A DNA stretch of 64,000 nucleotides, taken from contig NC_086383.1 of assembly GCF_036588685.1 (NCBI RefSeq), positions 310,001-374,000 on the forward strand, read 5' to 3'. This DNA comes from Mytilus trossulus (taxonomy: Eukaryota). Shown in pieces: positions 35,779 to 64,000 of this stretch (positions within the stretch are counted from its first letter, which is position 1; every line of letters begins with the position of its first letter). Position numbers and translations under genes: made by a program. The notes under the pieces are model-generated. The model ran no database searches. It saw only the letters and a program-made list of their open reading frames with translations, and was not told where the DNA came from.

Positions 35779-35931
35779 ATATCCAACAATACTGTTTTGT
35801 GCAATTGGTGGTAAGACGTTTTTTTGTCATTATGTAACGGATCTCGGGGCTATACCTATGTATTACGAACGTCATTACACGATTTAGATATGAAGAAGTG
35901 TATTTACATATCTTTTTTTTTTATTTTTTAG

Positions 35932-37901
35932 AGCATTTGTCTTGGACTGAAAATGATTCTATAGAAAACCAATTGGTTAACCACCTTATAAGAACAATAG
36001 GTACTGAAATAGACATACGTAAAAGACAAATACTGTGTATTTTAAATGATAAAATATTCAATGCAAAGCACGATAATATAATACAAATATCAAGTGGGAG
36101 TTTAGCAGAAGGAATGGATTTACCCGGAAGTGACATCGATATGATGTATGTCGATGATGGAGTAAACGTAACACAGATTGAAAGGAATATTAAACATCAG
36201 GTACAACGTACTGAAGTATTTATGGAGACAGATACTGATCATCCTGGATTTACTAGACTCAGATTGGTAGCAGCAGGGAAAACAGGAAATATTTTTCTAT
36301 CTAATGAATGTATTGTCAAAACACAAACAGGTCAATATTTATCAACGACCAACTTTGTAAATCATATGAAGCAGGGACACAAGCAGGAGACGTTGTCTAC
36401 ACACGGTCCCTGTTTATCAGATAAAAATCAAACTATTGATTATGCATTCTGCCTTAGAAGTAAATATTTGCCCTACCATGTTATGCCATGGATATTGCGT
36501 TATCGACGGCAATGGCCCCCTAATGTCATTATTGACAGGATAGTATATTACGGTTGTTTGTTAGTACCTATTGGACCAAGGAGTATGCCAAATTGTAATT
36601 TATTATGGAGAATATCTTTCTCTGTGGCAGAAAAACAACTTGTCCATTCGTTTAATTTCACCCAACTCTTGTGTTACGGTCTTCTTAAATTAACATTAAA
36701 ACGTATCGTAAACACAAACAACGGTGTGAAAGATTTGTTGTGTTCTTACTTTTTGAAGACGGCTTTATTCTGGGTCTCAGAGGAAGTTGATATTGACACT
36801 TTTCAATTACCTACATTGTTTATTTGTTTTTATCTCTGCCTAAATAAGCTGATGTCATGGGTAAACAACTGTTACTGTCCGAACTATTTCATACCTGAAC
36901 AAAACATGTTCTTAGGAAAGATCAATACATATAACAATAACTCATTAGTCAGTGTACTCAATAGTATAAAGTATAGGGGTATCAGGGGATTGATGCAGAA
37001 TTTATTTCATTATTATAAATGTAATATTAGTTGTTATCCGCCGTATAGTGACACTAGAGAACAATCGATACTAATGTTAGACTTCCTGTTTTACAGATTT
37101 TTTGGTATTATGGTGACTGATACGGAAATAATGTCAAATCTTACAAAAAAATATAACGTACTAACATTTATTGAATCATTACAAAGTTCTGAATCGTCTA
37201 CATTTAATATCGGTGTGTGTAAGTTTCATTATGCGTCTATCAGTCAATATGCAGCACAAATGTTACCACCACCGAATACAAATTATAACATACACACAAG
37301 GTATCATAGACATTTACATGACAGTAAACAGAGGGATGCCGTGACAGGTTGGTTGTTGTACGCGTCGTTTTATTATGTAACAGAACAGTACAATGTAACA
37401 CTCAGACTTACGGAGTATGTGCTATCAAAATGTTCACCTGATATGTTGTGGATGAGCCAATTCTTCCACAGTGAAGAAGTTGTAAATAATTACAGACATC
37501 ATGTACATTATTCTATGTCATTGAATGCAAAGATGAAAACAGCTGTTGCATATGATTTATTGTACTTACAACACTTATCAATAATACCAAAAGAATTATA
37601 TTTGGAGGTAGAAGACGCGTTCTTCATCATACCACCTGTAATAATGTCTCACTGTCTACGATTTCTATGCTATCATCATATTGGTGATAATATCAACAGA
37701 CAACAGACATTACGTCAATTATCTTTAACAAGAGCTGTGACGACTGATGTATTATCTAATACATATACACTAATTGGTGTATGTTGTGAAATATCCGGTG
37801 ATAATGACGCAGCTTTTCGTTGTTATAATGACGCTTTGCAATGTGATTATTATATATGTCCCTCAGCAGAAAAAAGGAAGTTAAGACTGTTAAATATCTA
37901 A
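35932..37901 (+). CDS. cGAS-like receptor / Mab-21 family nucleotidyltransferase, copy 1 (large terminal coding exon; upstream exon not identified)
   Basis: Uninterrupted ORF. NTase signature SGSLAEGMDLPGSDIDMM, third acidic residue in TIDYAF, Mab-21 motifs WRISFSVAEKQL, SYFLKTALFW, CPNYFIPEQNMF, and a helical/TPR-like C-terminus. Acceptor TTTTTTAG at 35930-31 (phase 1). The ORF-track start at 35898 is intronic. Confidence 0.93.
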
Positions 37902-37974
37902 ATTAAAGGAGATCGCTACGACATTTTAGTCCTCACTTTACTGCGTGCAGTGATCTATATAGTTATTCTCTTAG

Positions 37975-38395
37975 GTAAACAGCATTTGGTCATCTTCATG
38001 TACCAAGGCCAAAGTCTGAATACTTCAAAAAGACTTTTCAATATTCTGGTCTTATCATTTGGAATAATTTGCCAAATGATATAAAGGATTTAAGACATAT
38101 AAAAAGCTTTACGATGAAATGTGCTAATCTCTTTATCATAAAACAAAATGAGTAGACAAACTTGTTTAGGACCTTCTTGCCATGCTTGTTCTACAGTCTG
38201 TTTTCATGCTTGTATATATATATATATATATATATACGTAATGGTGTACATATGTATTTGTTATTGTTCTATATGCATTGATTGTTCCATTAATTATTCA
38301 TTTAAATGTGTGAAGGCCTTGTATGAGATTAACAATTGTATGTTAAATGAGTTACCTTCGTTAAATAAAGAATTAATTATTATTATTATTATTAC
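37975..38395 (+). mobile_element. 5'-truncated CR1/L2-type LINE 3' end inserted just after the cGLR-1 stop
   Basis: VPRPKSEYFKKTFQYSGLIIWNNLPNDIK remnant, AATAAA at 38364 and an (ATT)n tail. Absent from the paralogous 3' region of copy 2 (homology resumes ~38410 vs ~62238). Confidence 0.75.
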
Positions 38396-39099
38396 TAAAT
38401 TTGTTTAAGGTGTTATCAAGCTGCACCATGTAAGAGGTGTTAGTCTTTCTTAATTCAATTACATCGCACTAAAATATTGAATTGATACAGTGTCGATGCA
38501 ACCTTATACATGTTATATGTACGTTTTTATGATGCAAAAAATTCAAATATATGAGGGGTTTTGCTGGTATAAATCCATCTTCTTTTTTAGATATAGCATC
38601 CCGCTATATTCACATTATAAACCAATTATTCACAGTAAAACTACAAATTAAATCGTAATTGATTAAATGCACTTGTTGAATAACAGCAAGGCTATAACAT
38701 TTTACATTAAATTATGCCAAGTTTTATCAGACATGTCAGAGCTCAAACACCATTTTCCTGACAAGTCTAAAACATTTATTAGGTCTGCTGAAACAAACTA
38801 AAACAAAACAAACACACACAATGGCTACTGCTACCGAGAGTGAGAGCGAATTATCGGAATCTGTAGACAATTCAGACACAAATACATTATTAAGTGAAAT
38901 GGACAGCCCTTCATGCAGTTACTGGGACTTTCAAAACCAAATTCAAGCACTAGATATATATATCCCTGTAAATGTTCACAAAATCAAAAACAAAGTGCTA
39001 CAAATGAAAATCAAAAGCATCAGAGAGTGACTAGTTCAGAAATGTGACATAGACTCATCCCTTCAAGAGCAACTTTATAACAATACTTCAAAGAAAACA

Positions 39100-41500: not shown

Positions 41501-42254
41501 AGAGACAATAGCATCAACACAGACTCAATCAACCGTTAGTAACAACAGAAAACAGTCAATTTACAAAGGAAATTCTAATTTTTCAAAATTACATCCCGCA
41601 ATGAGTGGTATTTTCACCAATGCAATATTCCAAGGTGGAATTTTAAATTTGTCCTTTAACAATTGGACATCATCGACTTCAGATCAACAACTATTAGATG
41701 ACAACAAAAAGAACGAAATAAGCGTCTCTGCATACTTGACAGTGACAGTGATAGTGATTTCTAAAACATAATAATCATTCCATTTATTTATTGGTTGCTG
41801 GATTATCCAATATTTTCATTACTCGGTATGCTTTAACAATTTTTTAAATTTAAATGCAATACATATCTGATTATTATCGTATTTTATGTATCACATCAAT
41901 TGCTAAAATAATATGAATTTCTCCAGATGCTACATGTATAAAATACTTTTGCTTTAAGCAATTATGATTTAATGTATTTGCAAAGAGAGCAAATTAACCA
42001 ATAACAAATCATCTTGCATATACACCTATTATTACTAGCTTCAATTTATTTCATAAAACCTGAAACCAGTCTGCAAATAACAAACAAATAAAAAGATGCA
42101 ATATAAAAACACCAATACAAAAGATTATCAAATCGAGATGAAAGCAAATTTACGTGTATATGGCCTTTAACAATGATCAAAATACATACTGTGTAGCGAG
42201 CTTAAAACAAAACCCCAAAACAAAAAAACAAACAACAATTAAATAATGACTACA

Positions 42255-44243
42255 AATTTTTGCTCGCCTAAATTAAGGGTGCCAGCATGTCCTCTTTTTA
42301 TTCAAAATACTGATACTAACAAAATTTCAGTAGTTTTGATGCCTCCAGTTGACCTGTACAACAAAATTATTTGACCGCATCCACCAAAACTGACCATATA
42401 TGCACTTTAATTTGTAAATCTATATACCCGCATAGTAAATCAGCCATATTTTTTATGTCAGGATTCAATGTATAATACAATCATGACAATGGACAGCAAA
42501 ATTGCAATATAATAACAACAAATTTTTGTTCGCATAAATTTAGGATACCAGCATGTCCTCATTTTATTCAAAATATTGATACGTAACAAAATTTCAGTAG
42601 TTTTGATACCTCCAGCTGACGTGTACAACAAAATTATTTGACCGCATTACAAAAACTGACCATATGTGAACTTTAAATTGTAAATCTATATACCAGCATA
42701 GTAAATCAGTCTTATTTTTAATGTCAGGATTCAATGTATAATACAATCATGACAATGGACAGCAATATTGCAATATAATAACAACAAATTTTTGTTCGCC
42801 TAAATGAAGGGTGCCAGCATGTCCTTTTTTTTACTTAAAATACTGATACGTAACAAAATTTCAGTAGTTTTGATGCCTCCAGTTGACTTGTACAACAAAA
42901 TTATTTGGCCATATTTTTATGTCAGGATACAATGTATAATACAATCATGACAATGGACAGCAATTTGCAATATAATAACAACAAATTTTTGTTCACATCA
43001 ATTTAGGATACCAGCATGTCCTCATTTTATTCAAAATATTGATAGGTAACAAAATTTCAGTAGTTTTGATACCTCCAGTTGACTTGTACAACAACATTAT
43101 TTGACCGCATTACCAAAACTGACCATATGTGCACTTTAATTTGAAAATCTATATACCCAGACAGTAAATCAGTCATTTTTTTATGTCAGGATTTAATGTA
43201 TAATACAATCATGACAATGGACAGCAATATTGCAATATAATAACAACAAATTTTTGTTCGCATAAATTTAGGATACCAGCATGTCCTCATTTTAATCAAA
43301 ACATTGATACGTAACAAAATTTCAGTAGTTTTGATACCTCCAGTTGACTTGTACAACAAAATTATTTGACCGCATCCACCAAAACTGACCATATGTGCAC
43401 TTTAATTTGTAAATCTATATACCCGCATAGTCATGATAGTAAATCAGCCATATTTTTTATGTCAGGATTCAATGTATAATACAATCATGACAATGGACAG
43501 CAATATTGCAATATAATAACAACAAATTTTTGTTCGCATAAATTTAGGATACCAGCATGTCCTCATTAAATAGAGTCATTTTATTCAAAATATTGATACG
43601 TAACACAATTTCAGTAGTTTTGATACCTCCAGTTGACTTGTACAACAACATTATTTAACCGCATCCACCAAAACTGACCATATGTGCACTTTAATTTGTA
43701 AATCTATATACCCGCATAGTTAATCAGCCATATTTTTTTATGCCAGAATCAATGTATAATACAATCATGACAATGAACAGCAATATTGCAATATAATAAC
43801 AACAAATTTTTGTTAACATCAATTTAGGATACCAGCATGTCCTCATTTTATTCAAAATATTGATAGGTAACAAAATTTCAGTAGTTTTGATACCTCCAGT
43901 TGACTTGTACAACAACATTATTTGACCGCATTACCAAAACTGACCATATATGCACTTTAATTTGTAAATCTATATACCAGCATAGTAAATCAGCCATATT
44001 TTTTATATGTCAGGATTCAATGTATAATACAATCATGACAATGGACAGCAATATTGCAATTTGATAACAACAAATTTTTGTTCGCATAAATTTAGGATAC
44101 CAGCGTGTCCTCCTTTTATTCAAAATATTGATACGTAACAAAATTTCAGTAGTTTTAATACCTCATGCTGACTTGGAAAACATAACTATTTGACCAAAAC
44201 TGATCATATGTGCACTTTTATTTGCAAATCTATATACCCGCAT
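42255..44243. repeat. Tandem satellite, ~265-bp unit, ~7.5 copies
   Basis: Anchor TGTCAGGATTCAATGTATAATACAATC at 42456, 42722, 42920, 43184, 43460, 43741 and 44008 (one unit carries a ~68-bp deletion). Confidence 0.92.
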
Positions 44244-45218
44244 AGTATTGTACCGAGCGCCTTAATGTCTTCTCCTGGTGCTCCTGTTCACATTTTAGTA
44301 GGACCGTAAATGTACACGTAATCAATAATATTGGAAAACTATTAATGCAAAAAATATTCTGAATAAATTGAGAATGTCCGAATTTCATCTCTTTATTCAT
44401 AATAACAGTCACATCATATATAGGAGTTCATGATGGTGTACGTGTAAAACAAAACTATTTTGCCACATCATCAAAGTACCAACGAATCCGTACCAACACT
44501 GACATGTCTGAATTCATTTGTACTATTTACGCTGAACGGGTCGTTGTCGACCTGGGTACTCCATCAACGTAGTAAAAAGTATACGAGGTTCTCTTCTTGG
44601 AATCTATTATGTCTATTGATTGATTTTGTTTATAGTTAAACGACAAGTGGAAACTATTTCATTAAAATGCGCATTGAGTATAATTTTAGGACGTCCCATA
44701 TAAATATCGGCAATGACAAATCTGACGAATTTGACGAGATTGTTGATAGTTTTACCACACCGTATGCTTACGGACACTGTACAATTTCTGTTAGAATATT
44801 CTGCGGGAAATAGAATAGTAAATCCAAGGCAAACAAGTTGAATATCAATGAAATATCCATGCAAGTATAAATTTATGCATAAAGTGAAATTTAGGAAGGG
44901 ACAGGTAAACAACGGGGAACGAAGTAACGCAGACAATGTTGCCGATATCCCGTGATATAAGAATATTGTTCCGATGCGTTGGATAACCTTTCTATCCGCC
45001 TTCTAATAAAAAAAACTCTGTGTGATCGTATAGCCATTTTTTATTTATATAAGAATACATGTATATCAAATAAAAGAGAGCATTTGTATAATATCTAGTA
45101 GAGTCTAGCGAGTAAATAATAAATGATATCTGTGGATAAACCATGCGAATGTTGTTTACATATTTTATTGAAAGCTCAAGTCTGATAAGAAAATTCTTAT
45201 AACGATAATCTGCCATAA

Positions 45219-45600
45219 GCAGACCTGTCCTCAGGTCTGGTCAATAGCAGACTTGTCCACAGGTCTGGTCAAAAGCAGACCTGTCCTTAGGTCTGGTCAG
45301 GAGCAGACCTGTCCACAGGTCTGGTCTGAGGCAGACCTGTCCTCAGGACTGGTCAAAAGCAGACTTGTCCACAGGTCTGGTCTGGGGCAGACCTGTCCTC
45401 AGGACTGGTCAAAAGCAGACTTGTCCACAGGTCTGGTCTGGAGCAGACTTGCCGATAGGTCTGCAGCAGTCCTAAAAATGCAGACCGTAGGTCTGGTCCA
45501 CCGACGACGAAGTTAACTTGCTTGACTGCTTAAAAATTCTCAAGTTAACTTAGAAAGCAGTCAACAAGTTAACTCTAAGTTAACTTTTGTCAAGGTTAGG
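45219..45600. repeat. ~29-bp hairpin tandem repeat followed by an AAGTTAACTT palindrome cluster
   Basis: GCAGACCTGTCCACAGGTCTGGTC(N4-5) about 9-10 times, each with the inverted repeat AGACCTG/CAGGTCT. 45510-45590 holds four AAGTTAACT(T) palindromes within a longer inverted repeat. Confidence 0.85.
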
Positions 45601-47851
45601 ACCGCACCCATCTGTAATTCGGTCTAGTTTTCTACAAATATCATGCATATTGATATAAAATATCAGTTGCAAGTAACAATGTGAAAACTGGTGTAAATCA
45701 TGATATTTTTTGCTATATCAAAGACAAATCCTTGGCTATATGTACATTGCTTATTCACATGATATAGACTCAAGAAGGCAACACATTAAATGATTAATAC
45801 ATGTTAAACATGTTATATTCCATTCATAGTGTTAACTGTTTCAGTGTAACTAAGTTAGGATTTGAACCTAAGGCCTTCCCATAAAGAGAGGCTCTGACCC
45901 CTGAGACACCTAGTTGAATACATTTCTCCAAGAATCATAAAGACGATGTATCTTATAATTTAACTCAAAGTTACGAAAAAGATTAATGTTCAAGGACTAA
46001 CAGTATGCAGCTAAGCAGTCTTTAAAAACATTTAGAAATTCAAGTGATCTGGTTCTGTTATTGTTCCTTTATTTTACCAGGGAAGAAAGTACCCGCGGAA
46101 AATATGTTATCCTCAATTATAGCATAAGGCAAAGTACTTATAGGAAATGGTACCCTATAACTTGAACCAAATACTGTCCTAATTCGTGGAAGTCGCGGAT
46201 CCCGCCATTTAAAAAAGGGGGGTTCCCAACCTAGGACAAAAAAGGGGATCCATCAATATGTCCCCATTCAAATGCATTGATCGGACAAAAACAAGGAGGA
46301 GGGGGGGGGGGGGGGCTTTCAACCCCCAGAACCACCCCTGGTTCCGCCAATGAAGTATGTTCAAAAATAACACCTACCTTCCAAAGGACAATTTATACAT
46401 GTTATAATACCTGTCTTTTTAAATTACATTCTCGTAACTAATAACAGCTATATGTACTCTCAGACTTGATACAAACAGCATTTTGATGCGATCTTGCTGG
46501 ATTTCTTTAGTGTCGCTTATGCTTAGCAGTTGATCAGCAGTCAGCGAATAGAAATTTTCTTCTTCTGGTGATATGAAATAATTCGATCTTTCAATCTATT
46601 GTAAAGGTTGTTTTTTGTTTGTTTGTATGATCTTCAAATAGTATACATCAATATATGCATTATATATATCTAGTTTCATCAAAGACACTCCGGTAATAAT
46701 AATTCCCGCAAAATTATTAAAAAAAAAATTTTGATCAAAAACATTGCTTTGCAAGATGATGAAAATGTTATGTTAATGTGGATTGTATAGACACGCGACA
46801 GAATATGAAGCTTAAAGTCTCGTTCTCTACGCTCACTCGACCTTTAGCTTCATATTCTGGCTCGTGGGCGTATATTTTTTTTAAATCTTTTTATCTACAA
46901 CCAGATATTATGTACGTATGTTTGTTGTTTTTACAAAGGGTTGTTATTTAAATATATTTTTTATTCAACATTTCTTTAAGAAAAAATGTTTCAGAAGTGA
47001 AATAAAGATTTATATTTCAATAAAAATAAGGGTTTAAAATAAATTCTACATTGAGTTTTAAACAATTGATGTATGTTTTTGAAAGGTACTTTTTGTACTA
47101 ATGTTTCAGCTTGAAGTAAACAAAACTCTTTTTTGCTGCCAAAAACAAACAAACACAAATGAACGGTCGATACCTCACGAGAACCGTTTATCTCATTTGA
47201 TGAAACCTAGTCTTTATTTTTTTTTATATTGTGCATTGTTGTGTCGTATGAACTATTGTTTGTTTGTTTTTGTTTTTGTTTTTTAGCCATGATGTTGGTT
47301 TTTTTTAATTTTCGATCTATGGTTCTGATTTTCCCTCTGGTATCTTTCGCCCCTCTTTTGAAAGTTCTAAAGATGACATGAGTACACGCCGGATTTGGAT
47401 GTTAAGAAACACTAGACGCTTTCTAAACCTTTCAAATCATGTCAGCCCAAATTTGCTTTGTAATGCTCGTACTATCAAATAGGTTCTCCAGATGGTACCG
47501 CTGCTTTCATCTTATAAACCTCACGAGTTGACTAGGATGTGTAAATATATGTAGCCCTTGGTCTTCTTAAACCATCAGTCAAATCGTTGCTAAATGTATT
47601 TGTTCATTTGTATTTGCGGGATGTATAACAACACGTCAATTTTCAGCCAGAATGAGAGTTTGAATCGTTGCTACCTGTAGAAAGAGTGCAGTTAAACATC
47701 ATTGCCTTATTCGGAAAAGGTATTTGTAATCCTGTTTAATAACGATGGAATATTGAAAGTGTTAGGACAAATTCATGATATGTGAATTTTACCATAATAC
47801 TATATTTAATTTTATCTTACTGATCTCATTGTACTACATGACTGATAAATC

Positions 47852-48383
47852 TACATGGCAGACAGCATTACCCGACAACCGCAGAAATCAACATGGCAGA
47901 GAGAATTTCCCGACAACCACAGAAATCAACATGCAGACAGCATTACCCGACAACCGCAGACATCAACATGGCAGACAGCATTACCCGACAACCGCAGACA
48001 TCAACATGGCAGACAGCATTACCCGACAACCGCAGACATCAACATGGTAGACAGCATTACCCGACAACCGCAGAAATCATCATGGCAGTCAGCATTACCC
48101 GACAACCGCAGATATCAACATGGCAGACAGCATTACCCGACAACCGCAGACATCAACATGGTAGACAGCATTACCCGACAACCGCAGAAATCATCATGGC
48201 AGTCAGCATTACCCGACAACCGCAGAAATCATCATGGAAGACAGCATTACCCGACAACCGCAGAAATCAACATGGCAGACAGCATAACTGACAACCGCAG
48301 ATATCAACATGGCAGACAGCATTTTCCGACAACCGCAGAAATCAACTTGGCAGACAGCATTACCCGACAACCGCAGAAATCAA
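47852..48383. repeat. 38-bp minisatellite, ~14 copies
   Basis: CATGGCAGACAGCATTACCCGACAACCGCAGAAATCAA repeated; accounts for the three overlapping repeat ORFs. Confidence 0.95.
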
Positions 48384-48764
48384 AAATAGTACTTTGACAA
48401 CATGTCTGCATACTGTCCAGTTGTCAGTCTATATTGAGTACATTAAATAATAACACTTTAAGAATTAACCCTTTTGTTAATAAAGGATCAGTTGTTTTAA
48501 GTGTTGGACTATGAATTAAAGTATAGCTGTTTATTCCATAGATTCTATGAAAAAATAGATTTAAGCAAAACTTATACTCAGAAAGCTGACAACGAAGACA
48601 ACTAAATCTGAGTTCACTACATGTAAAACATTATAAATAGGTCGATGCAAACAATCCCTAAATTAACAATGATACATGACGTGAAACACAGAACAGGGCT
48701 GTTAAACTTTGAATACACTGCTCTGATTAAATCACGTAAAAATTTGCATAATTTATCTTTTTAG

Positions 48765-48912
48765 ATTCATCATGGACACAGATCACAGTATCCACGAAAG
48801 TGACAATACAGAGCATATGCATGAAATAAGAACAATTACATACTGGAAGAAATATGAAGAAAAATATGTCCTTATCGTGGAAAGCGCAAATACACACCGT
48901 TGGTTTACCAAT
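48765..48912 (+). pseudogene. Truncated, frameshifted paralog of the cGLR first coding exon (remnant of a deleted third gene copy)
   Basis: TTAG|ATTCATCATGGAC is identical to 59119-59135. MDTD...EIRTITYWKKYEEK is followed by a 1-nt shift into PYRGKRKYTPLVYQ as in copy 2; homology then jumps to ~63342. Confidence 0.85.
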
Positions 48913-49189
48913 TTAATATTTACAATTAATTTTTATGAAGCGAATATCAAGTATAAATCTGACAGTTTAACAAATATAACCCTTGACTCGTCTGAGGTCT
49001 AATAATGGATCAACGAAATGACACATGATAAGAATCGAAAGTCTAACTCGTTATGAATGTGAAATCTTTCCGTTTCAAAATGTTACAAAACACTCAACAC
49101 TATTTTGACAATTGATGATATTAAGTTAACACATATTATACAAATGTAATGTATGCATAACCATGCGTCTAAAGCTAAGTAATGTGGGC

Positions 49190-49500
49190 ATAAGAAAGTT
49201 GAAAACGGAAGTGAATGTCCAATAAAAGCCAATGAACCAATATGGAAAACTGTATTGGCCTTGTCCGAAAAGCAATATAAACTGTTGATTTCTATCAACA
49301 GGCAAACGCAATCAGTATTACACATGCTGCTATATTCGTATTTAGGATGATTGTATATATCATTTATACAGATTGAAGTAATGTTTTATACTGTTATACG
49401 CAGCAGCTTTTCATCTCTTCATCATATATATATCTTCTGAACAACGAATGGTTTGTTTCTTTTTTGTTTGTTTCAGCTTCTTCAAATGTCTGCTTCAAGT
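49190..49500 (+). promoter_or_regulatory. Promoter/5'UTR module copy A (ETS site, CCAAT boxes, TATA, Inr-like, 22-nt exon 49477-49498)
   Basis: GAAAGTTGAAA-CGGAAGTG, CCAAT x3, ATTGG, TATAAA at 49276, TCAGT at 49312. Conserved in copies B and C. Confidence 0.55.
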
Positions 49501-50509
49501 AACTCATGCTATATTGAGTTAGAAAGAAACAATTGTTTATCTAAAATTCAATAGTTTTTATTTTGCAATTTTCGGGGCTTCTTAATAGTTGACTTACTCG
49601 GTATTTGTTTTCCAATTGTAGGAGGCCTAACGATTCCTATTGTTGTTTAAATTGTATGTTATGTAGTGACGCTTTGAGAGTTTATTCATTGACAATCATT
49701 CCACATCTGTAATGATTATAAAAAATGTAACAAACTGCTTAATCTTGGTTGTTAAGTATGGCTCCCCCTAAGAATCATACAGATGGGGATACAGAAACAG
49801 TTGTAAAAACTACTTAATCTGTGTTGTTCATTTGTATCTACATGTGGTTTCTTTAAACAATGTTACATAGCATTATGTGCTGCTGTTGTCTGTTATATGG
49901 TCGGGTTGGTGTCTCTTAGATACATTCCCCATTTCCATTCTCAATTTTGCCATCTAACTGATGATACAATTTTTTAAGTTCAACTCTCTAAACATATAAT
50001 AAGTGAAGTATGACATAAGAAAAAACAATAACTAAGGTAAAATTCAAATCATTTTACGTATAAGCACAAGAAAAATCGAAATCATCTAAAAAAAGACTAA
50101 ACATAATTGTAAGTCTTATTTCACTTTATTTTATTTCCTTACTGTGAAGTTTATCAAGTAATGAACACTTATGATAAATTTTTTTCAACCTATTTGTTAA
50201 AGAACGAACCAATGAAAATTTTCCACGACAAGTATTGTAAATTTCCAGCAGGAAGTTTTTCTTCTTTCGTTTTCTTTCTTCTACGACGTCATCTCCTCAC
50301 AACTACAACGTTATATCATCGAGGTGGGTGGTGGTCAGGGATTACAACTGTAAATGTATCTCCATTGAAAGGAAGGTAAGATTTCTCTCATTTCTGGAAA
50401 AAAAATATTCTTCGAAATACTGTAAATTTCACGGAAGGTTTCTAACTTAATGTCAAAATCAAAAGCTCAAACATCAAATGAATGTATCACACTTTTCATA
50501 TTTCTGATT

Positions 50510-52120
50510 GGTCCACATTGGTGGATTCAACTGGTCTTAAAGCAAGTATAACCTCAGATAGAGTGACTATAGATGTGGTACACATTGGTTGATTCAACTG
50601 GTCTTAAAGCAAGTATAACCTCAGATAGAGTGACTATAGATTTGGTACACATTGGTTGATTCAACTGGTCTTAAAGCAAGTATAACCTCAGATAGAGTGA
50701 CTATAGATTTGGTACACATTGGTTGATTCAACTGGTCTTAAAGCAAGTATAACCTCAGATAGAGTGACTATAGATTTGGTACACATTGGTTGATTCAACT
50801 GGTCTTAAATCAAGTATAACCTCAGATAGAGTGACTATAGATTTGGTACACATTGGTTGATTCAACTGGTCTTAAAGCAAGTATAACCTCAGATAGAGTG
50901 ACTATAGATTTGGTCCACATTGGTTGATTCAACTGGTCTTAAAGCAAGTATAACCTCAGATAGAGTGACTATATATTTAGTGCACATTGGTTGATTCAAC
51001 TGGTCTTAAAGCAAGTATAACCTCAGATAGAGTGACTATATATTTGGTGCACATTGGTTGATTCAACTGGTCTTAAAGCAAATTAGCCTAGGATAGAGTG
51101 ACTATAGATTTAGTACACTTTGGTGGATTCAACCTGGTCTTAAAGCACATTTAGCCTAGGATAGAGTAACCATAGATTTGGTGCACATTGGTGGATTCAA
51201 CTGGTCTTAACGCAAATGTAGCCTAGGATAGAGTGACTATATATTTGGTACACTTTGGTGGATTAAACCTGGTCTTAAAGCACATTTAACCTAGGATAGA
51301 GTGACTATAGATTTGGTACACATTGGTTGATTCAACTGGTCTTAAATCAAGTATAACCTCAGATAGAGTGACTATAGATTTGGTACATATTAGTGGATTC
51401 AACCTGGTTTAAACCACATCTAGCCTAGGTTAGACTGAATATAGATTTGGTACATATTGGTGGATTAAACCTGGTCTTAAAGCAAATTTAGCCTAGGATA
51501 GAGTGACTATAGATTTAGTACACTTTGGTGGATTCAACCTGGTCTTAAAGCACATTTAGCCTAGGATAGAGTAACTATAGATTTGGTGCACATTGGTGGA
51601 TTCAACTGGTCTTAACGCAAATGTAGCCTAGGATAGAGTGACTATAGATTTAGTACACTTTGGTGGATTCAACCTGGTCTTAAAGCACATTTAGCCTAGG
51701 ATAGAGTAACTATAGATTTGGTGCACATTGGTGGATTCAACTGGTCTTAACGCAAATGTAGCCTAGGATAGAGTGACTATATATTTGGTACACTTTGGTG
51801 GATTAAACCTGGTCTTAAAGCACATTTAGCTTAGGATAGAATAACTATAGATTTGGTGCACATTGGTGGATTCAACTGGTCTTAACGCAAATGTAGCCTA
51901 GGATAGAGTGACTATAGATTTGGTACACATTGGTGGATTCAACTGGTCTTAACGCAAATTTGGCCTAGGATAGAGTGACTATAGATTTAGTACACTTTGG
52001 TGGATTCAACCTGGTCTTAAAGCACATTTAGCCTAGGATAGAGTAACTATAGATTTGGTACACATTGTTGGATTCAACCTGGTCTTAAGGCAAATTTAGG
52101 CTAGGATAGAGTAACACATG
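50510..52120. repeat. 67/68-bp tandem satellite, ~24 copies, two subtypes
   Basis: GGTACACATTGGTTGATTCAACTGGTCTTAAAGCAAGTATAACCTCAGATAGAGTGACTATAGATTT on the left; ...CACATTTAGCCTAGGATAG variants on the right. Confidence 0.95.
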
Positions 52121-52777: not shown

Positions 52778-52937
52778 GGTTGCGTTCAATATCGTAGAGG
52801 CTACAGATATGTTTGTCTACTGAACAAGTAGCTAGCCTAGCTTCTTTCAATATCTATGGAGCAACTAGGTCCGCTACAATTTCAATATTCCTAAATCTAC
52901 TTAGCCCTATGTAGCCGCTACGATATTGAACGCCACC
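52778..52937. mobile_element. MITE with ~28-bp TIRs
   Basis: GGTTGCGTTCAATATCGTAGAGGCTACA ... TGTAGCCGCTACGATATTGAACGCCACC. Absent from the paralogous block near 56150. Confidence 0.8.
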
Positions 52938-53459: not shown

Positions 53460-53812
53460 TAAGAAAGTTGAAACCGGAAATGAATATCCCATAGTAGCCA
53501 ATGGGTCAATACGGAAAAACTGCATTGGCCTTGTCCGAAATGCGATATAACTGTTGATGTCTATCGACACCTAAACGTCTTCAATACAGCAGATGCTGCT
53601 ATATTCGTGTAAAGAATGATTGTATATATCATTTAAAAAAAAATGAAGGTATGCTTCAATTTCCGTTGATGTAAGTGTTTTTCACTGTCATGACTGTTGC
53701 GCAGCAGCTTTTCAGATCTTTGTTTTAATAAAAACAATTAGATATATGAACAATGGATGATTTGATTCTCTTTTTTTTTGTTTCAGCTTCTCTAAATGAC
53801 TGCTTCAAGTAA
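53460..53812 (+). promoter_or_regulatory. Promoter/5'UTR module copy B (probable promoter of cGLR copy 2)
   Basis: GAAAGTTGAAACCGGAAATG, CCAAT at 53498, ATTGG at 53524, TATAA at 53546, donor AAG|GTATGC at 53649, 22-nt exon at 53787-53808. Confidence 0.5.
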
Positions 53813-56800
53813 TTCATGCTGAAATTTTATCGTGTGGTTTTCTTCGTTGTGGTGTTATGCTATTGTTTCATAAAAAGGGTGAAGGTTTGGTACCAATAAA
53901 ACGTTTAGTCCCGCTGCAAATGTTTTGCACCTGTCCTAAGTCAGGAGTCTGTTGAAAATACTTGTCGTTTGTTTATGTAATTTATACGTGTTTCTCGTTT
54001 TTCTTTTTTTCATATAGATTGGACCGTTGGATTTCCCGTTTGAATGGTTTTACACAAGTAATAAATTATTGTTGGGCCTTTTATAGCTTTTTGTTCAATG
54101 TGATCCAAGGCTCCGTGTTGAAGGCCTTACATTGACCTATAATGGTTTACTTTTATATATTGTTATTTGGATTTAGAGTTATCTCATTGCCACTCAGACC
54201 ACATCTTCCAATGTATATGTATTGGGTTAGTAAGAAACAATTGTTTAGCTATAATTCAAGGAATTTAATTTTCTTTCAAATTTTCTTTTTTTTATTTTAT
54301 ACTAGGCACTTTAATAGTTCACCTACTTAGTATTTTCTTTTCTCTCATTATTGGAGGCCTCACGATGACCTATAGTTGTTTAAATTGTATGTTATGTAGT
54401 GTACCTTGGAGAGTTGATCCATTGACAATTATACAACATCAATTCTGTTATCATTCTAAATACTGTAAAACATACTTAATCTTTGTTGTTCATTTGTATC
54501 TACATGTGATTTCCTAAAACAATGTTAAATATCTGTATGTTCTGCTGTTGTCTCTTCTTTGGTTTGGTTGGTGTCTCTTAGACACATTCCACATGTTCGT
54601 TTTCATGTAACCTGACTGACCCATTTTCTGTCACATACATATTTGTCTTTTTGTTAAAAAAACGTTTATGAACTGTTGAGTCAAACCTATTTTTTTTATA
54701 TTTTTTTATCTTAATTTGTTTAAATAGATTTAATGAAAGTAGTATGCTGTTTTTCGTATCTTTATCAAACCGTTGTGTACGGACAGCTCGAACAAAAAAT
54801 ATCATTCATAAATAGTTATCAAAAGTACCAGGATTATAATGTTATACGCCAGACGCACGTTTCGTCTACATAAGACTCATAAAAAATATAAAAATATCCT
54901 TTAAACAGAATGAAAATTAGAAAACATCGCAAAATAAACCTATCTTGCTTTTTACTCGTATTTCACTTCATTTTATTTCCTTTCTGTACATTTAAACAAG
55001 TATTTAACACTTATGTATTTTTTCTAAATATTTATTAAATTATAAGCCAATAGGGACAAAAATTGTAAGTTTCCAGCAGGAAAATATTGTATTTTTGTTT
55101 TAAATAATAGAAGTATTGTGGAGGGCAGGGTCTGTTTAGCCACGTTAAAGTTTACTGTCATTACATCAATACAATACTGATAATTCATTTTAACTTCACG
55201 TGTCAATCACAAATCAAATATAACAATTAAGACGAATATAACGTTGAATATCTCCAGTGGTATTTTTTTTTAAATGTTTTATAAAAGCATGTAAAGTCTG
55301 CATCTAAAGTCAGTAATGGTGTCATATGTATTTGACCTTTCAATTGATATAGTGTTCAGTATTAAGTATCAAATTCTAGAAATAAATGAACTCCGAGGAA
55401 ATTTCAAACTGGAAAGTATGTGTGAATAACGTTTAGACAATTATCCACTGCGGTTCCCTTGAAAGGACAAGACAATGATCATGCAACTTAGGAGCTATAT
55501 AAACTCATTAAAGATACCAGGACTAAATTTAGTATATACGCCAGAAGCACGTTTCGTCTACTAAATAAAATTAAAACTTCAGATAAAGTACGAATTTGGA
55601 GAGCATAAGATGCAAAATTCCTAAAAGTTTGGCAAAATACAGCTAAAGCAATCTAAGAAACGCCGCTTTATTTAAAAACAAATTAAACTTTTGTATACAC
55701 TTAATTTATTAATATAACAATATCAATGATAATTTATGTCAGCACAAACAGTGCTGACTACTGGGCTTGTGATATCACATTTTAAAATGTTTTGTTTATT
55801 TCGGTGCCCTGTAAAATGTTCACTTCTAAATTTTCCCGACATTTTGGTACAAACAGAAAATAGAAAAATATCAACGACAATTTGTTTAATTCCACCATAT
55901 CTTGTTAATGTGTCTGGTCAGCGCATGTGTTTTCTTTCGGTGGTCGTTTTTGTAGAGGCGGAGCTAGAGTATGTAGGTAATGAGTTATCTCAATAGTACG
56001 TTCATTTTGCAACTCATCTTTCAATTTGAGTTATTAAGACGGCCTATTACTGTTAGTTGCATATGCTCACATATCACATCGCATTATTGTTATTTCGTCG
56101 TTATTGGTTTGAAATGAACATAATCGCAAACAAAGTGTGTCTTTATAACACGTGTATATTTGTATACATAAGATATAAAGCAATCAAAGGACTCTTTTAT
56201 GCGATTTACGGGAAAGGTTTGTATAAAAATAAGAATGGAGTTTGGATTCGACTGATGAATCATAAAGAAGACATGTTTCGGTTAAGTCCATTGATATAAG
56301 TGATTTATTCGCTTTATCAGGTTTTCAATCTGATTGTTTAAACAAAAACAATAAAATCAATAAATGTGTTTGTAGATAAATGTTTTTTGTGTTCTGTTAA
56401 ATTGTTACGTTTAAAATTGTTACATGGTGACAACTGCTGTTTTGACTACTTCATTCATTGTGTCTGTTAAGTAAACGCATCATTGTTAATGTAACGGAAT
56501 TTGACGAGACTGTCATCAAAGAAAGTGGGTTAGCATAACAGAACTAGGTTTATTCCACCATTTTCTACAATTGCAAATGCCTCTACTAAGTCAGGGATTA
56601 CAGTTCTTGTTCATTCCCTTTAATGCGTTTTTTATTTGAATTTTGTGATGTTATTATGGTTTTTCCTAATTAATTTTCCTCTAAGTTCAGTATTTTTTTT
56701 ATAGATTTTACTTTGTATATATCATCTGAACAAGTGTTTCAAAATTATTTAACCAGGAAGGTTTTTGTTCTCTCCTTGCCTAACCTCTTAACCGACAGCT

Positions 56801-56819
56801 TTACATATTTCAAGAGATA

Positions 56820-57042
56820 CAGAGGTTACAAATGATAATAACTAAGGATTTGCTTATCACAGGAGTAAATTACCTTAGCGGTATTTGGAACAACTTTTTT
56901 GGAATTTTGGACCCACGATGGAATTCACCTTTGAGCTGTTTGGCTTTTTAACTGTTTTGATCTAGGCGTCACTGACTAGTCTTATGTAGACGAAACGCGC
57001 GTCTGGCGTACTAAATTATAATCCTGTATCTTTGAAAACTAT
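56820..57042 (+). mobile_element. Retrozyme-family monomer fragment with mutated hammerhead (56966-57009)
   Basis: Reverse-complement homolog of the 355-bp unit; the core reads CTGACTA instead of CTGANGA. Further truncated copies at ~54811-54880 and ~55510-55775 (minus strand). Confidence 0.75.
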
Positions 57043-59129
57043 ATATCCAGGACTCCAATGAATGTTTTTCGTTTAACTGTTTTACATTTGTATTTTCGGG
57101 GCTTATTCAAACTTACTAACGGGGTATGCTTGCTTATTATTGTCAGGTGGAGACTTATCTCGTTTACTATCATTCTACATATTTGTATGATTTTGAAAAC
57201 TGTTAACTTAGAAACTGTTTCGTCCTATATTTTTTATATCTTCATGCGTTGTCCCTAAATTGATTTAATGAAAAGTGTTATACTGTGTTTCGTATCTGTA
57301 TCAAACCGGTGTATATGAGACAATATATGAACAAGTCTACTTTCCATGTCCCCCACTTCACCAGCAATTATTTGTTTATTCAACCATATTTTTTAAAAAT
57401 ATTAAATTTCAGTATAAACTAAATTATTTAATGCATCAACTTCTGCCAATTAAACACTCATTCTTGTATTTCTTCCAATAAAATATTGTAATTTAAATGT
57501 TCAACCCCCCTAAAATCATGTTGTCCCCTGTGTTTTTTTTTGAAAAATAAATCATTCAAATCATATCCAAATTAATTCAACAGGCGTCCGATTCTCTCAT
57601 ATATGATAATTATATTATATAATAAACTTGCCCCTCATTTGTCTTTTTATATTATAACTAGAGCATGTAATAAAATTTTGCGAATTTTAAGACAAAACAA
57701 TTTGTCCCCAGGGGTGATTTCCCTCCTGTTACCACAAGATTTTTTACCTGTTGAAACGTTTACAAGACCAAGAGTAATTTTCCCATTATGTATTTTGAAG
57801 AGCATCATTTCCTGAATTCATTAGTACAAAGAAATAGATGGAAAGGCGGCCAGGTTTGAAAATTCAAGCCCATCCAAAGTACGAATTTATAGAAAAATAC
57901 TTTATGGTGTTCTATCCTTTTATAGCCTTTTCTTACACTTTCTGAGAATAATTTTATGTGTGCACCACAACATAAGTGTTTTTATATCATCTTTTTAAAT
58001 GTTATATGTCACAGGAAATACACTTACATTTAATGTGATAAAAAGGACAAAAACTATCGCGTAATTCCATTCTGTTACGTTCTGTCATGTTTCCTTATAA
58101 AAAGTAAGAGCATAAGCATCATCAGTAACAGGAAGGATGCTTAAGACAATTTCACTAAAGAATCGAAAAGTTTATCTACTATATGCCAACCATTTCCTTT
58201 AATTTATGTTATCACCACCTTATCCAGAAATTTAAAAATAATACACAGTATATTGAATAAAAAAATAGAGTTTTTCCCTTTGATAACAGCAGAGAACATT
58301 GTGCAATTCTAGTATAGTAGATAGTAACATCAAGGAATTTATTTTAGAATTTTTCATTACCTAGGCAGATTTTTCATCTTGCAAATACAATTTCAAAGGA
58401 TAAATGACATTGTTTGCTGTTATCTTCCAATTGTGACCAATTTGAAATGATGTATTTTTCTTAAACTTTAAAATAAAGCAGAAAAAAACTCTGTCCTGTT
58501 ACCGTTTTCCTGTAACTCAAGATTCTTTCATGTTACCGACATATCTGACTATATTTAAGTGTATTTCTAAAATCAATAATTGGCATTTGATAAACTATTG
58601 CAGGATATACTAGTAAACCCTAAATAGTGTCTTAAACTTATTTCGTTACCTTTTAGAAACTTTTTAAAATTGGTACACAATTGTTTGAATTACAGACAAC
58701 AGTTCCTAGATCCACAATGTGTGTTCTTCGATTCGTGTTATTAAAATACCGGGTCTAAAGATTATTATTTTTTTTTCTTTATTGCAAAAAAATTGACTTT
58801 TTTCAGATATTGTCTCATATGCACAAATCGAATAAAATTATATCATCCCATGAACAAAATGAAAGTTTAAAACATCGCAAAATAAACTTAACATAATTGC
58901 AACACGTTTTTCACTTTATTTTATTTCCTCACTGTACAGTTGAACTTGTATTAAACACTTATGATTAGTATCCTTCTATGTATTTAAGAAATCATAAGCC
59001 AATGAAAGTTTCTTTAGGATCAAGAATTGTAAATGTCCAACAGGGCTGTCACATTTCGAATACACTGCTCTTATAAAATAATGTTATTTAATGATTTCAA
59101 CTTTGATAATTTCTTTTTTTAGATTCATC

Positions 59130-59445
59130 ATGGACCAGGAAAATGACGATAAAAAGCATATGATTGGAATAAGAAAACTTACATACTTGAAGACATATGG
59201 GGTTAAACGTTTTCCCTACCGTGGAAAGCGCAAATACACGCCATTGGTTTACCAATCTGATGATGGAGGAATCGTTATCTCAAATGACGTTTTCGGATTG
59301 ACAATCAGACAGTTTGAACGGATGTTTAAAGATTGTTTAGATAGAAGAAAAACAAACGAAAGCTGGATAATGAATCTTCGATATCCTGACAAAGCTTCAA
59401 ATGAATATCTGGAATTCTTAAATAAGTGTACAGACTGCAATAAAG
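59130..59445 (+). CDS. cGLR copy 2, first coding exon (105-aa N-terminal extension)
   Basis: Acceptor TTTTTTTAG at 59121-22, ATG at 59130, donor AAG|GTAAC at 59446 (phase 1). Joins in frame to 60188 (G+AG = Glu). Confidence 0.8.
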
Positions 59446-60187
59446 GTAACTTGTTTTTGTTTTTCATCACAAAATAGAGAATTTGATTTGTGTCTAAAAT
59501 GTTGATGCAGAACACATATAGCAATAATCTTGAAAGATTAAAAAAAACATGTGATAATTTAGAACCATAAGTCAGAGACAAATAGAGTCAGGACCATATA
59601 ATTCAGACGTTGTCTTTTGTCTTTGTATATCATCATACTTATTTATTGATTGTTCGTTTATCTTTTTTTTATCCAACCAATCGATTGTTTTGCTTAACGC
59701 TATTTTGAAAAACCTTGATTATTGTAATAACAACACCATGGCCTATTTTTCCTTTCTAGTTTTTGTATAGATTGGACTGTTAGATTTCTTTTTTGACAAG
59801 TTTTACACTAAAATGTGCTGGGTTCCTTTACAGCGTGCTGTTTGATTTGAACCAAGCGTCCGTGATGCAAACCGTTCTTTGAACTTTAACGGTTTACTTT
59901 CTTCTTAACCATGTTAACAGACAACCAGACTAAAAAAAAAACCAATTTAGAGAACAATAGAATTTACTATAAACAACTGAATGATAGTTCTTCATCTTCA
60001 TGTTAAGTAATAGGCCGATGATACGCCAGGGGCAAAACATCCAACAATACAGTTTGTTCAATTGGTTGTAAGATTCCATATTTGTCATTATGTAACGCAT
60101 CTCGGGGTATGTACCTATATATTACAAACGTCATTATACGTCATAAATATGGAGAATTATATTTATATTTCTTTATTTATTTGATAG

Positions 60188-62163
60188 AGTTTTTGTCTTG
60201 GACTGAAAATGATTCTATAAACAACCACTTGGTTAAACACCTGATAAGAACAATAGGTAATGAAATAGACATACGTAAAAGACAACTTTTGTTTATCTTA
60301 CATGATATAATATCCAATGCACATGACGAAAATTTAACACAAATATCCAGTGGGAGTTTAGCAGAAGGACTGGATTTACCTGGAAGTGACATAGATATCA
60401 TGTTTGTCGATGAAATAGTAAACGTAACATTGATTAAAAGAAATATTAAACATCCGGTACAACGTACTGAAGTATTTATGGAGACAGATGCTGATCATCC
60501 TGGATTTACTAGACTCAGGTTGGTAGCAGGAGGGACAAGAAAAAGCACTTTTGTATCTCCGAAATGTTTTGTCAGTACACACACAGGTCAATATTTATCA
60601 ACGACCACCTTTGTAAATCGTCTAAAGCAGAAACACCAGAAGCATCAGCAGAATTTCACAATACACGGTCCCTGCTTATCAGATAAAAATCAAACTTTTG
60701 ATTTTGCATGCTGCCTGAGAAGTACATATTTGCCGTACAATTCTTTGCCCTGGATATTCCGTTATCGACGGCAATGGCCCCCTAATGTCACCATTGACAG
60801 GATAATAAATAACGGTTGTTTGTTAGTACCAATAGGACCCAGGATTATGCCAAATTGTGATTTGTTATGGAGAATATCTTTCTCAGTGGCAGAAAAACAA
60901 CTTGTACATTCGTTTAATTTCACCCAATTCTTGTGTTACGGTCTTCTTAAATTAACATTAAAGCGTATCGTAAACACAAACGACGATGTCAAAGATTTAA
61001 TGTGTTCTTACTTTTTGAAGACGGCTTTATTCTGGGTCTCAGAGGAAGTAGATATTGACACATTTAAATTACCTAACTTGTGTATTTGTTTTTCTCTTTG
61101 CCTAAATAAGCTGATATCATGGGTAAACACCTGTTACTGTCCAAACTATTTCATACCTGAACACAACATGTTCTTAGGAAAGATCAATCAATATAACAAT
61201 TACTCACTACTCAGTGTACTGAATAGTATAAAGTATAGTGGAATTAGTGGATTGATGCAGAATTTATTTCATTCTTATCCTTGTAAAAAAAAGTGTTATC
61301 CACCATATAGTGAAACCAGCGTACAATCAATAATAATGTTAGACTTTCTGTTTTACAGAATTCCTCATACGTTGAAGAATGGTTCGAGAATGACGTCAAA
61401 TCTTACAAAAATATATAAAGTACTAAAATATATTAATTTTTTAGAAAATTCTGAATCGTCTACATTTCATATTAGTGTTTGTAAGTTTCATTATGCTTCC
61501 ATCAGTCAACTTGCTGTACAACTGTTACCACCACCGAATACAAATTATAACATAAGCACAAGTTATCATAGACATTTACAAAACGGTATACAGAAGGATG
61601 CTGTGTCAGGTTGGTTGTTATACGCGTCGTTTTATTATGTAACAGGACAGTTCAATGTAACACTCAAACTTACAGAGTATGTCCTATCAAAATTTTTTCC
61701 TGAGATGGTGCAATTAGGTGGGATTTACTACAGTGATGCAGATATAGATAATTACAGACATAATGTACATTATTCTATGTCATTGAATGCAAGGATGAAA
61801 ACAATTGTTGTAGATAAGGTGTTGTACATACCGCACTCATCATTAATACCAAAAGAACTAGCGATGGAGGTAAAAGACAGTGTGTTCTTGATACCACCGT
61901 TTATAATGTCTAACTGTCTCAGATTTTTATGCTATCATCATATTGGTGATACTTTCAACAGACAACTGGCACTACGTCATTTACATTTCGATGATCATAT
62001 GTCAACTATTGTATTATCTAATACATTTACACTACTTGGAGTATGTTTTGAGATTTCCGGTGATAAGGACGCCGCTTTTCATTATTATGATGTTGCTTTG
62101 CAATGCGATAGTTACATATGCAGTTCAGCAGAAAAAAGGAAGTCAAGACTTTTAAACATCTAG
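60188..62163 (+). CDS. cGAS-like receptor / Mab-21 family nucleotidyltransferase, copy 2 (terminal coding exon; spliced product 763 aa)
   Basis: SGSLAEGLDLPGSDIDIM, TFDFAC, WRISFSVAEKQL, SYFLKTALFW, CPNYFIPEHNMF and a helical/TPR-like C-terminus. Acceptor AG at 60186-87. Colinear with copy 1. Confidence 0.94.
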
Positions 62164-62889
62164 ATCAAAGTTGTATCGCTGCATGATAATGTCGTTCTAT
62201 CGACAACTCTTATCTATAAGGCCAAACTAAATATACATGTGTTATCGAGTTACACAATGTAATGGATGTTAGTTTTTTTTTAATTGAAATTAAATCACGA
62301 AACAATAATGTATAGATAAAATGTCGAAAAAATCTGATATGTACATAGTACGTTCTTATGTTGCGAATAAATTATACAAAATTGTGATCTTTTAACAACA
62401 GAATGATGATTTAATTATTTCATCAAACGAGTGGATAACAACTGTCATATTCCTGGCTTGGTACATATCTTTTCTTATGTAGAAAATGATAAAACCGTGG
62501 TGTATCACGAGCTATATTATAAATGGTGTCTCATTTTGTCGACTGGGTCCTGAAAAACGTACTTTGCGGATGGATTTAACTCATTTATGAAGTCCATTCA
62601 ATGACCTCAGATATATCAAACATTTGCCCTTTGCTCTGTGGCTAGTTGAATCATTGACACTTACCTAATTGCTATCAACTCGTTATTTGGTTCAAACAAG
62701 TAAAACCAGTTTCTACACGGCGTGATTCCATTCATCGTGTACATTTGGATAAAACTGATCAGGTACCAGAATGAAAATATAGAGCATTTATTTAACTGTT
62801 ACATGTGATTACTGGGAAATAAATGTATAAACAAAAATGGAGTTGAGTTGCGATAGAAATCCTGTGTAATTAACTTGCTTTTTCTGTGT

Positions 62890-63232
62890 TGAGTGTGCTA
62901 AAGACTCGACGTTAGCTGATTAGGAGAGACTCAAATAGTAACAGGTCAATGCAGCTTATCGTAAACATATAACGTAGCGGATATACACACAGCCAGCTCA
63001 TTACACGTTTTTAAATGATTCCTTTTCTTCGATTGCACTATGAATCCTACCGTGAAGAAGACAGTGTGAAAGACTCGAAGTAAGCTAATTAGGAGAGACT
63101 CAAATAGCAAGTGGTCAATGTAGCTTATCTTGAATATATAACATGGCAGATATAGACACAGCCAGCTCATTATACATTAGTAAATGATTCTTATTTTCCG
63201 ATTACACTATGAAACCTACCGTGAAGAAGATA
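62890..63232. repeat. Direct tandem duplication of ~170 bp
   Basis: AAAGACTCGA...TAGGAGAGACTCAAATAG...CACAGCCAGCTCATTA...CCTACCGTGAAGAAGA occurs twice. Confidence 0.8.
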
Positions 63233-63614
63233 CAAGAAAATTATTATCTGAACTTGTCTTGTAACATTCAGGGTGGATTTTTGTCAACTTTGTTAGATGT
63301 AATTTCTGATTATACGTCCAAACATTTTTTGTCTTATGCTGTTTACAATTAATTTGTATTATGCGAATATTAAGTATTTGACAATAATAAATCAGACAAA
63401 TTAACAAATATTGCTCTTTACTCGTCTGCGTTCTAATAATGGATCACCGCAAATGACACAATGATAAGAATCGAAAGTCGTACCCCCAAGCATGTAAACT
63501 ATTTCCGTTTTAAAATGTAACAAAACACTAAAAATTATTTAAACAATTGACGATTATAAATTAACATATATAATACAAATGTAATGTATGCATAACCACA
63601 AGTCAAAAGCGAAG

Positions 63615-63950
63615 TAAAGAAGTTGAAACCGGAAGTGAATGTCCAGTAATAGCCAATGGACCAATATGGAAAAACTGTATTGGCCTTGTCCGAAAAGCAA
63701 TATAAACTATTGAGTTCTATCAACAAGCCAACGCCATCAGTATTGCACATGCTGCTATATTCGTATTTAGGATGGTGTATATATCATTTTAAAAAAATGA
63801 AGTTATGTTTTACAACGTTATACTCAGCAGCTTTTCATCTTTTTGTTTTTTTTATAAACAAAACAATAAAAATATATATCTTCTGAACAAAGGATGGTTT
63901 GTTTCTTTTTTGTTTGTTTCAGCTTCTTTAAAGGTCTGCCTCAAGTAATT
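63615..63950 (+). promoter_or_regulatory. Promoter/5'UTR module copy C (probable start of the next array unit)
   Basis: CCGGAAGTG at 63629, CCAAT at 63653 and 63661, ATTGG at 63679, TATAAA at 63701, TCAGT at 63737, 22-nt exon at 63923-63944. Confidence 0.55.
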
Positions 63951-64000
63951 TATGTTATATTGAGCTAGTAGGAAACAATTGTTTAGCTAAAATTCAAGGA

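Follow-up and report, generated by a model that had tools for sequence, protein, structure and literature searches.

The stretch of DNA analysed here is a 64 kb window of Mytilus trossulus contig C11 (C11:310001-374000) that contains no N runs. It takes in part of a ~38-kb tandem cluster on C11 of genes related to the cGAS-like receptors (cGLRs), with three intact genes, two of them inside the window, accompanied by gene relics. The large exon of these genes is predicted to encode a complete cGAS-type nucleotidyltransferase (NTase) cage, and with a probability of about 0.72 we assign the cluster genes to one bivalve cGLR clade that has a C-terminal TPR-like solenoid and whose members would be ligand-activated, signal-making enzymes. 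The proteins would then make a cyclic di- or oligonucleotide signal for mussel STING-type receptors, with the conserved core presumably doing the chemistry and the faster-evolving TPR-like tail perhaps binding the trigger or a partner protein.

Two long open reading frames (ORFs) lie on the plus strand, at 35898-37901 (copy 1) and 60082-62163 (copy 2), as reported in the initial annotation, which described two colinear Mab-21/NTase ORFs. Self-blastn aligns them over 2.15 kb at 84% DNA identity, and their proteins are 72% identical. Both lack an ATG start and are preceded by a polypyrimidine tract and an AG acceptor, and each is therefore taken to be a 3' exon (Table 1). Arithmetic from the exon coordinates gives a product of 763 amino acids (aa) for copy 2, in which the large exon is joined to a 105-aa, basic (pI 9.3) exon 1. 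Searching and folding were done on the two copy 2 exons separately, or with natural full-length relatives, and the 763-aa spliced form was left aside. Copy 1 is different, in that its NCBI model LOC134691541 (P0001, 679 aa, 100% identical) splices a 23-aa leader to position 35932; this substitute exon, unrelated to the usual exon 1, has 23 complete codons and contributes the first base of the codon split by the splice junction. A canonical exon 1 for copy 1 is absent across the whole window by tblastn and by sensitive blastn, which rules out a usual exon 1 hidden upstream of it. The earlier description of ~760-aa proteins with a ~105-aa basic N-terminal extension thus applies to copy 2 but not to copy 1. 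A third intact copy was recovered by genome search at C11:381552-383531, 11 kb past the window (LOC134691544, P0012, 86% identical to copy 2).

In Pfam scans, Mab-21_C scores above its cut-off (E 1e-9 to 2.6e-10, with 2.6e-10 for copy 1), whereas the Mab-21 NTase model falls below its own, so that of the two models named for this check only Mab-21_C passed. The N-terminal half alone, searched against the PDB with phmmer, gave chance matches only. The AlphaFold model of the copy 2 exon-2 product, built with 68 aligned relatives, has a pLDDT of 92 and a pTM of 0.91, and its top Foldseek matches are human and mouse cGAS, Cv-cGLR1 (8gjw) and Sp-cGLR1 (8gjy), with E ~1e-10 and a target-normalised TM of ~0.67. 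VIA-align superimposes the model on cGAS with Z 28 and an rmsd of ~3 Å over ~300 residues, and the region covered, model residues 10-362, is the whole catalytic domain; the predicted match to the cGAS fold was therefore found. A profile of the family searched against the PDB ranks Sp-cGLR1 first (2e-31), followed by cGAS (~1e-20), Cv-cGLR1 (1e-17), MB21D2 (1e-16) and MAB21L1 (9e-13).

Both copies contain the motifs SSGS and SDID and a third Asp, located within TIDYAF in copy 1 and TFDFAC in copy 2. In the model of copy 2 (exon-2 numbering) G55-S56 come after strand 1, D67 and D69 are at the start of strand 2, and D171 is on a later strand; the catalytic residues of copy 1 are at the same positions, in agreement with the intact catalytic sites claimed previously. 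In the profile alignment D171 is opposite the Asp of mouse cGAS 'SVDIIL', which we take to be the third catalytic Asp. Conservation was assessed in 202 family proteins of at least 560 aa from across the pteriomorph bivalves, and 189 of them retain the complete set of five catalytic positions. Two cGAS motifs, WR-SFS--EK and CSY--KT, are common to the family and cGAS and are nearly invariant in the family. The criteria for a cGLR given by Li et al. (2023, PMC9980059) are the active site, two-lobed homology and the predicted fold, and the mussel genes show all three, the homology extending over both NTase core and helix bundle. Because the active site is complete, the genes are placed outside the non-catalytic Mab-21 branch (MAB21L1/2, MiD49/51).

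The conservation of the site bears on whether these proteins are enzymes at all. Non-catalytic Mab-21 members do exist, and MiD51 and MAB21L1 are among the weaker matches. The 140-protein screen table of PMC9980059 includes no Mytilus proteins, and it holds scallop and oyster proteins with the clade motifs HGPC, SYF[LM]KT and CPN[YF]F (matched by motif, not aligned) whose 'active' note is empty. These points would suit non-enzymatic scaffolds of the MAB21L1 or MiD51 type, which would retain the nucleotide-binding pocket for a cofactor and work by means of the TPR-like tail. However, an incomplete active site marks the non-catalytic branches (PMC9980059, Fig. 1A legend), whereas retention of all five positions in 189 of 202 proteins is hard to explain other than by catalysis; catalysis is accordingly favoured and we regard a purely scaffolding role as distinctly improbable.

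The kind of chemistry is a separate matter, as the GS/DxD/D set is shared throughout the Pol-beta NTase superfamily and the N-terminal half gives weak Pfam matches to general NTase and poly(A)-polymerase palm models. The proteins could be active NTases outside the STING cyclic-dinucleotide pathway, making linear 2'-5' oligonucleotides in an OAS-like manner or adding nucleotides to RNA or protein, with the tail recruiting the substrate, and no product is on record for the clade that would speak to this. We nonetheless think it unlikely, since the match to cGAS at Z 28 extends over the whole cage, beyond the palm alone, the WR-SFS--EK and CSY--KT motifs are nearly invariant, and the closest solved relative, Sp-cGLR1, is a cyclic-dinucleotide synthase. 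STING ligand-binding-domain matches are present at exon level in the M. trossulus genome.

Comparison with characterised systems places the mussel genes within the cGLRs but apart from the known enzymes. They share with the cGLRs of PMC9980059, above all its cGLR-TPR fusions and bivalve radiations, the cGAS-type cage, the GS/DxD/D site, the Mab-21 C-terminal helix bundle, a TPR-like C-terminal region and massive lineage-specific expansion, but the 15 characterised enzymes include none from this clade or from Mytilus, and the mussel clade has SGS in place of [QT]GS, a longer spacer to the third Asp and, in Mytilus, a private 105-aa module. Sp-cGLR1 (Stylophora pistillata) and Cv-cGLR1 (Crassostrea virginica), the closest solved structures by profile, likewise have no cGAS-type zinc thumb, but are single-domain proteins of ~350-376 aa that lack the TPR-like tail and the N-terminal module and are only ~18-19% identical. 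Vertebrate cGAS resembles the mussel proteins in fold over the whole catalytic domain, in WRxSFSxxEK and CSYxxKT, and in the third Asp at 'SVDIIL'; it differs in having a zinc thumb and a long disordered basic N-terminus, both missing from the mussel proteins, and in lacking the extra TPR-like tail. The mussel genes are not cGAS orthologs. The family shows a 12-residue gap in the profile alignment opposite the cGAS zinc-thumb segment 'KCCRKEC...' and the residues preceding it. Given the missing thumb and the absence of an 'active' note for the scallop and oyster relatives, plain dsDNA is probably not the trigger. A role as innate-immune sensors is suggested by membership of the family.

After residue ~337 the AlphaFold model is all-helical apart from two small hairpins and continues for ~320 aa, and this tail folds alone with a pLDDT of 91. 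The earlier description of a helical, TPR-like C-terminal region is consistent with this model, although the proposed length of ~270 aa is too short. Fold searches with the tail return generic TPR-type proteins only (Foldseek best E 2e-3, at low TM), the VIA Z of 9-11 is within the range that helical repeats reach by chance, and the tail's neighbours in the ESM Atlas are unnamed mollusc clusters only. TPR likeness in sequence is confined to the last repeat, which scores below the Pfam cut-off (18 bits against 27.8), with a profile match to designed consensus TPRs at residues 609-644. The tail is best described as a predicted TPR-like solenoid of generic type, and the evidence reaches no further. 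The initial annotation described an architecture to which it could assign no ligand or product; the architecture itself is not an unknown one, as the combination of a cGLR with TPRs is already catalogued. PMC9980059 lists both TPR fusions (Fig. 1C) and ankyrin fusions of cGLRs, and Kaur et al. (2021, PMC8195603) described oyster (Crassostrea gigas) TRADD-N proteins in which a Mab-21/cGAS domain is followed by TPRs. The C. gigas proteins also represent a bivalve lineage-specific expansion, but have HEPN, Ig, DED and TRADD-N in front, where the mussel proteins have the 105-aa module or nothing. Only the N-terminal module is an orphan.

This exon-1 module has no Pfam match and no usable ESM Atlas match. 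Database proteins that contain it number 97, every one from a Mytilus species and nearly every one with Mab-21 as well, and on these sequences it is a conserved orphan domain confined to the genus Mytilus and carried by most family members. In a set of 75 family members the module is conserved slightly better than the other parts, with a mean pairwise identity of 65% against 62% for the core and 51.5% for the tail. A predicted complex of the module with the exon-2 product scored 0.01, with the partner fold uncertain, and carries no weight in either direction. One could imagine that the module is an undescribed signalling or assembly domain and that the variable tail responds to something other than nucleic acid, for instance a protein or peptide of a pathogen, giving a three-part sensor unlike the characterised cGLRs; this is a speculative and rather doubtful proposal, but if it were true, gene conversion that keeps the core uniform while tails swap would be a means of generating receptor diversity. 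One C11 gene model annotated as 'scavenger receptor cysteine-rich type 1 protein M130-like' (P0294, with SRCR domains) also opens with the exon-1 module, at 73% identity. It could be a real product of exon shuffling, or else a gene prediction that started in an orphan first exon and read on into its neighbour.

Table 1. Features of the cGLR array, in window positions. L001 is the adjoining genomic sequence past the window, which carries the copy 3 unit.
Feature	Position	Strand	Description
Copy 1 substitute first exon	34210..34279	+	ATG 34210, GT donor 34280, phase 1; tblastn of LOC134691541 protein (P0001) 100%
Copy 1 large exon	35932..37901	+	NTase core and TPR-like tail (predicted); 655 full codons, then stop; P0001 100%
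Relic of dead unit	48692..48912	+	Proximal upstream sequence and first ~47 codons of exon 1, frameshifted
3' flank of dead unit	48919..50318	+	Colinear with 63342-64000, then L001 1-1204; DNA identity 81-94%
Orphan R module	50061..50274	+	74% identical to 58869-59044 (self-blastn)
Duplicated tandem segment	52118..62340	+	Matches copy 3 unit (L001 1460-9722) in several colinear pieces, 82-92%
Orphan R module	54882..55051	+	77-78% identical to 58845-59003
Upstream module R at copy 2	58845..59044	+	~200 bp, directly 5' of exon 1; candidate promoter or 5' untranslated region
Copy 2 exon 1	59130..59445	+	105 full codons, ATG start, GT donor phase 1; tblastn of Mytilus relatives 82-92%
Copy 2 intron	59446..60187	+	GT..AG, 742 nt; skipped by a contig of a probable RNA run, coverage almost nil
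Gene-conversion tract shared by copies 2 and 3	59617..61490	+	Identity 95-100% (mostly 97-100%); 100-nt sliding identity, three-copy comparison
Copy 2 large exon	60188..62163	+	cGAS-like core residues 1-336, TPR-like solenoid 337-657 (predicted; exon-2 numbering)

The locus has changed through tandem duplication, deletion, first-exon replacement and gene conversion, and the active turnover proposed for it was confirmed. The deletion is in the dead unit between copies 1 and 2. Its relic matches 59039-59256 by self-blastn and gives two tblastn matches in different frames, and in a three-way alignment the similarity breaks at 48912/48919 and jumps to 3' flank matching 63342-63997, which in the copy 2 unit is 1.2 kb downstream of the stop codon. 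The relic was thus truncated by a ~4.1-kb deletion that took out the remainder of the gene, and the deleted third copy noted earlier is real. The count of three upstream (R) modules also stands, whereas their description as promoters does not go beyond a candidate role; a sigma-70 promoter scan of the upstream module was not above shuffles, although such a scan is not meaningful for an animal gene. The R module has 9 copies in the whole genome, most of them within or beside genes of the same cGLR clade, and was rejected as a common transposon because of this low number. No transposon features were found flanking the genes.

The tandem segment that includes copy 2 appears, from its identity to the copy 3 unit, to be recently duplicated, with the two largest pieces ~91% alike and a start-to-start spacing of ~11.35 kb by blastn. 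A maximum-likelihood tree pairs copies 2 and 3 as sisters (100/100) and leaves copy 1 unresolved relative to paralogs on C8 and elsewhere on C11, at a distance of 4.2 Mb. Searching 10 kb to either side of the array gave no additional copy or relic.

The similarity between the copy 2 and copy 3 units is uneven. They are 89-95% identical around exon 1 and 71-91% from 61491 to beyond the stop codon, with a ~1.9 kb tract of higher identity between these regions. The core has a synonymous divergence (dS) of 0.049 and the tail one of 0.197, a fourfold difference. The tract takes in half of the intron and thus includes non-coding DNA, and for this reason the identity of the two cores is attributed to gene conversion and not to selection alone; purifying selection as its sole cause was rejected, half the intron lying in the 96-100% tract. 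Gene conversion has therefore homogenised the cores of copies 2 and 3 while their tails have a different history, and both copies are mosaic.

The ratio of nonsynonymous to synonymous divergence (dN/dS) over the whole large exon is 0.65-0.69 in all three copy pairs; when copies 2 and 3 are compared by region, the core has 0.28 and the tail 0.75. Ratios of ~0.65-0.7, together with the relic and orphan modules at the locus, the loss of the usual first exon from copy 1, the lack of an annotated protein matching copy 2 among the matches listed and the stop codons in 17 of the 68 best genomic matches, raise the question of whether the window copies are decaying or selfishly amplified, without present function. 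We consider this highly improbable, as three frames of ~2 kb have stayed open at dS 0.12-0.23 in an AT-rich genome (GC 32%) with their catalytic residues intact, the core ratio is 0.28, NCBI models treat copies 1 and 3 as coding, and neither transposon features beside the genes nor a high copy number of the R module is seen.

The family to which these genes belong is large. A first-look search of the M. trossulus genome gave 725 candidates, and among the best 68 of these 51 are without a stop codon and 17 have stop codons. In database clusters at 50% identity there are 3131 representatives. Copy 1 has 802 relatives, and all of the named ones among the 120 listed are from Mytilus; its best match in any other Mytilus species, among the matches listed, reaches no more than 78% identity, and it is alone in its 90% cluster. 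Such a distant best match fits lineage-specific turnover, though gaps in annotation could also explain it. Full-length relatives are present in Pinctada (pearl oyster) and in the scallops Mizuhopecten and Argopecten, where the source names them cGAS or 'cGAS-like receptor 2'. About two thirds of the best 68 M. trossulus family members are on contig C11, often clustered locally, for example at 8.07-8.45, 17.6-17.8, 22.1-22.2 and 35.2-35.7 Mb. For the paralog at C11:4566905-4568881 (L005) no first exon was found within 3.6 kb upstream, and R-module copies (C11:4602778-4607333) are 34-38 kb from it on the same strand; it may have a very long intron or a displaced first exon.

Expression was assessed with short contigs from four runs of related mussels, one recorded as RNA and three guessed to be RNA. 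Contigs of at least 93% identity cover exons 1 and 2 and hardly any of the intron or flanks, and one of them skips 742 nt with GT..AG ends at the predicted exon junction. Transcription and splicing are thereby shown for close family members that share this exon structure.

Several observations weigh against assigning enzymatic, ligand-activated signalling to these genes. No enzyme activity, ligand or product is on record for any clade member, and the screened scallop and oyster relatives lack the 'active' note. The cGLR pattern printed in PMC9980059 is not matched literally, since the mussel proteins have S for Q/T and a spacer of 99 residues where 50-90 are specified, although a scallop relative screened in that study has a similarly long spacer before the third Asp. 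The convergence of the three acidic residues in one active site is predicted from sequence, profile alignment and strand placement in the model. No annotated protein identical to copy 2 is among the matches listed, the RNA-type contigs from related mussels are not specific to copy 1 or copy 2, and dN/dS values of ~0.65-0.75 would fit relaxed constraint as well.

The family, its expansion in Mytilus (the cGLR counts in PMC9980059 are 218 for M. galloprovincialis and 119 for M. coruscus) and the domain combination are already published, and the locus is a real but ordinary example that adds little as a discovery. Its interest is of another kind. Bivalves have the largest known cGLR repertoires, most of them without a known trigger or product, and for the catalogued cGLR-TPR class we found no biochemical characterisation in the literature. 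The locus offers natural variants, namely a full-length form, a form without the N-terminal module, and a pair with near-identical cores and different tails. It also records repertoire turnover at base level, in a duplication, a 4-kb deletion, a first-exon replacement and a ~1.9-kb conversion tract.

Tandem repeats are found in and around the array, and an Rfam scan of the whole window gave no RNA family at gathering score. A direct repeat of ~355 bp is located at 10771-11423 (93% alike), with further copies in the duplicated cGLR unit at 56837-57045 on the minus strand and at L001 5695-5902. Between copy 1 and the relic, at 42243-44247, are about 7 tandem copies of a ~266-268-bp unit that are 88-90% alike, and just upstream of the relic a 38-bp repeat is present in 14 copies (47847-48383), also with a 76-bp period, and yields a spurious 180-aa ORF of repeated peptide. 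Inside the dead unit, 50374-52120 is occupied by a satellite whose 67-bp unit is present in 24 copies that are 90% alike and show a higher-order period of 135 bp. The corresponding stretch of the next unit (L001 ~1204-1460) measures only ~250 bp, and the satellite is therefore considered to have expanded in the dead unit.

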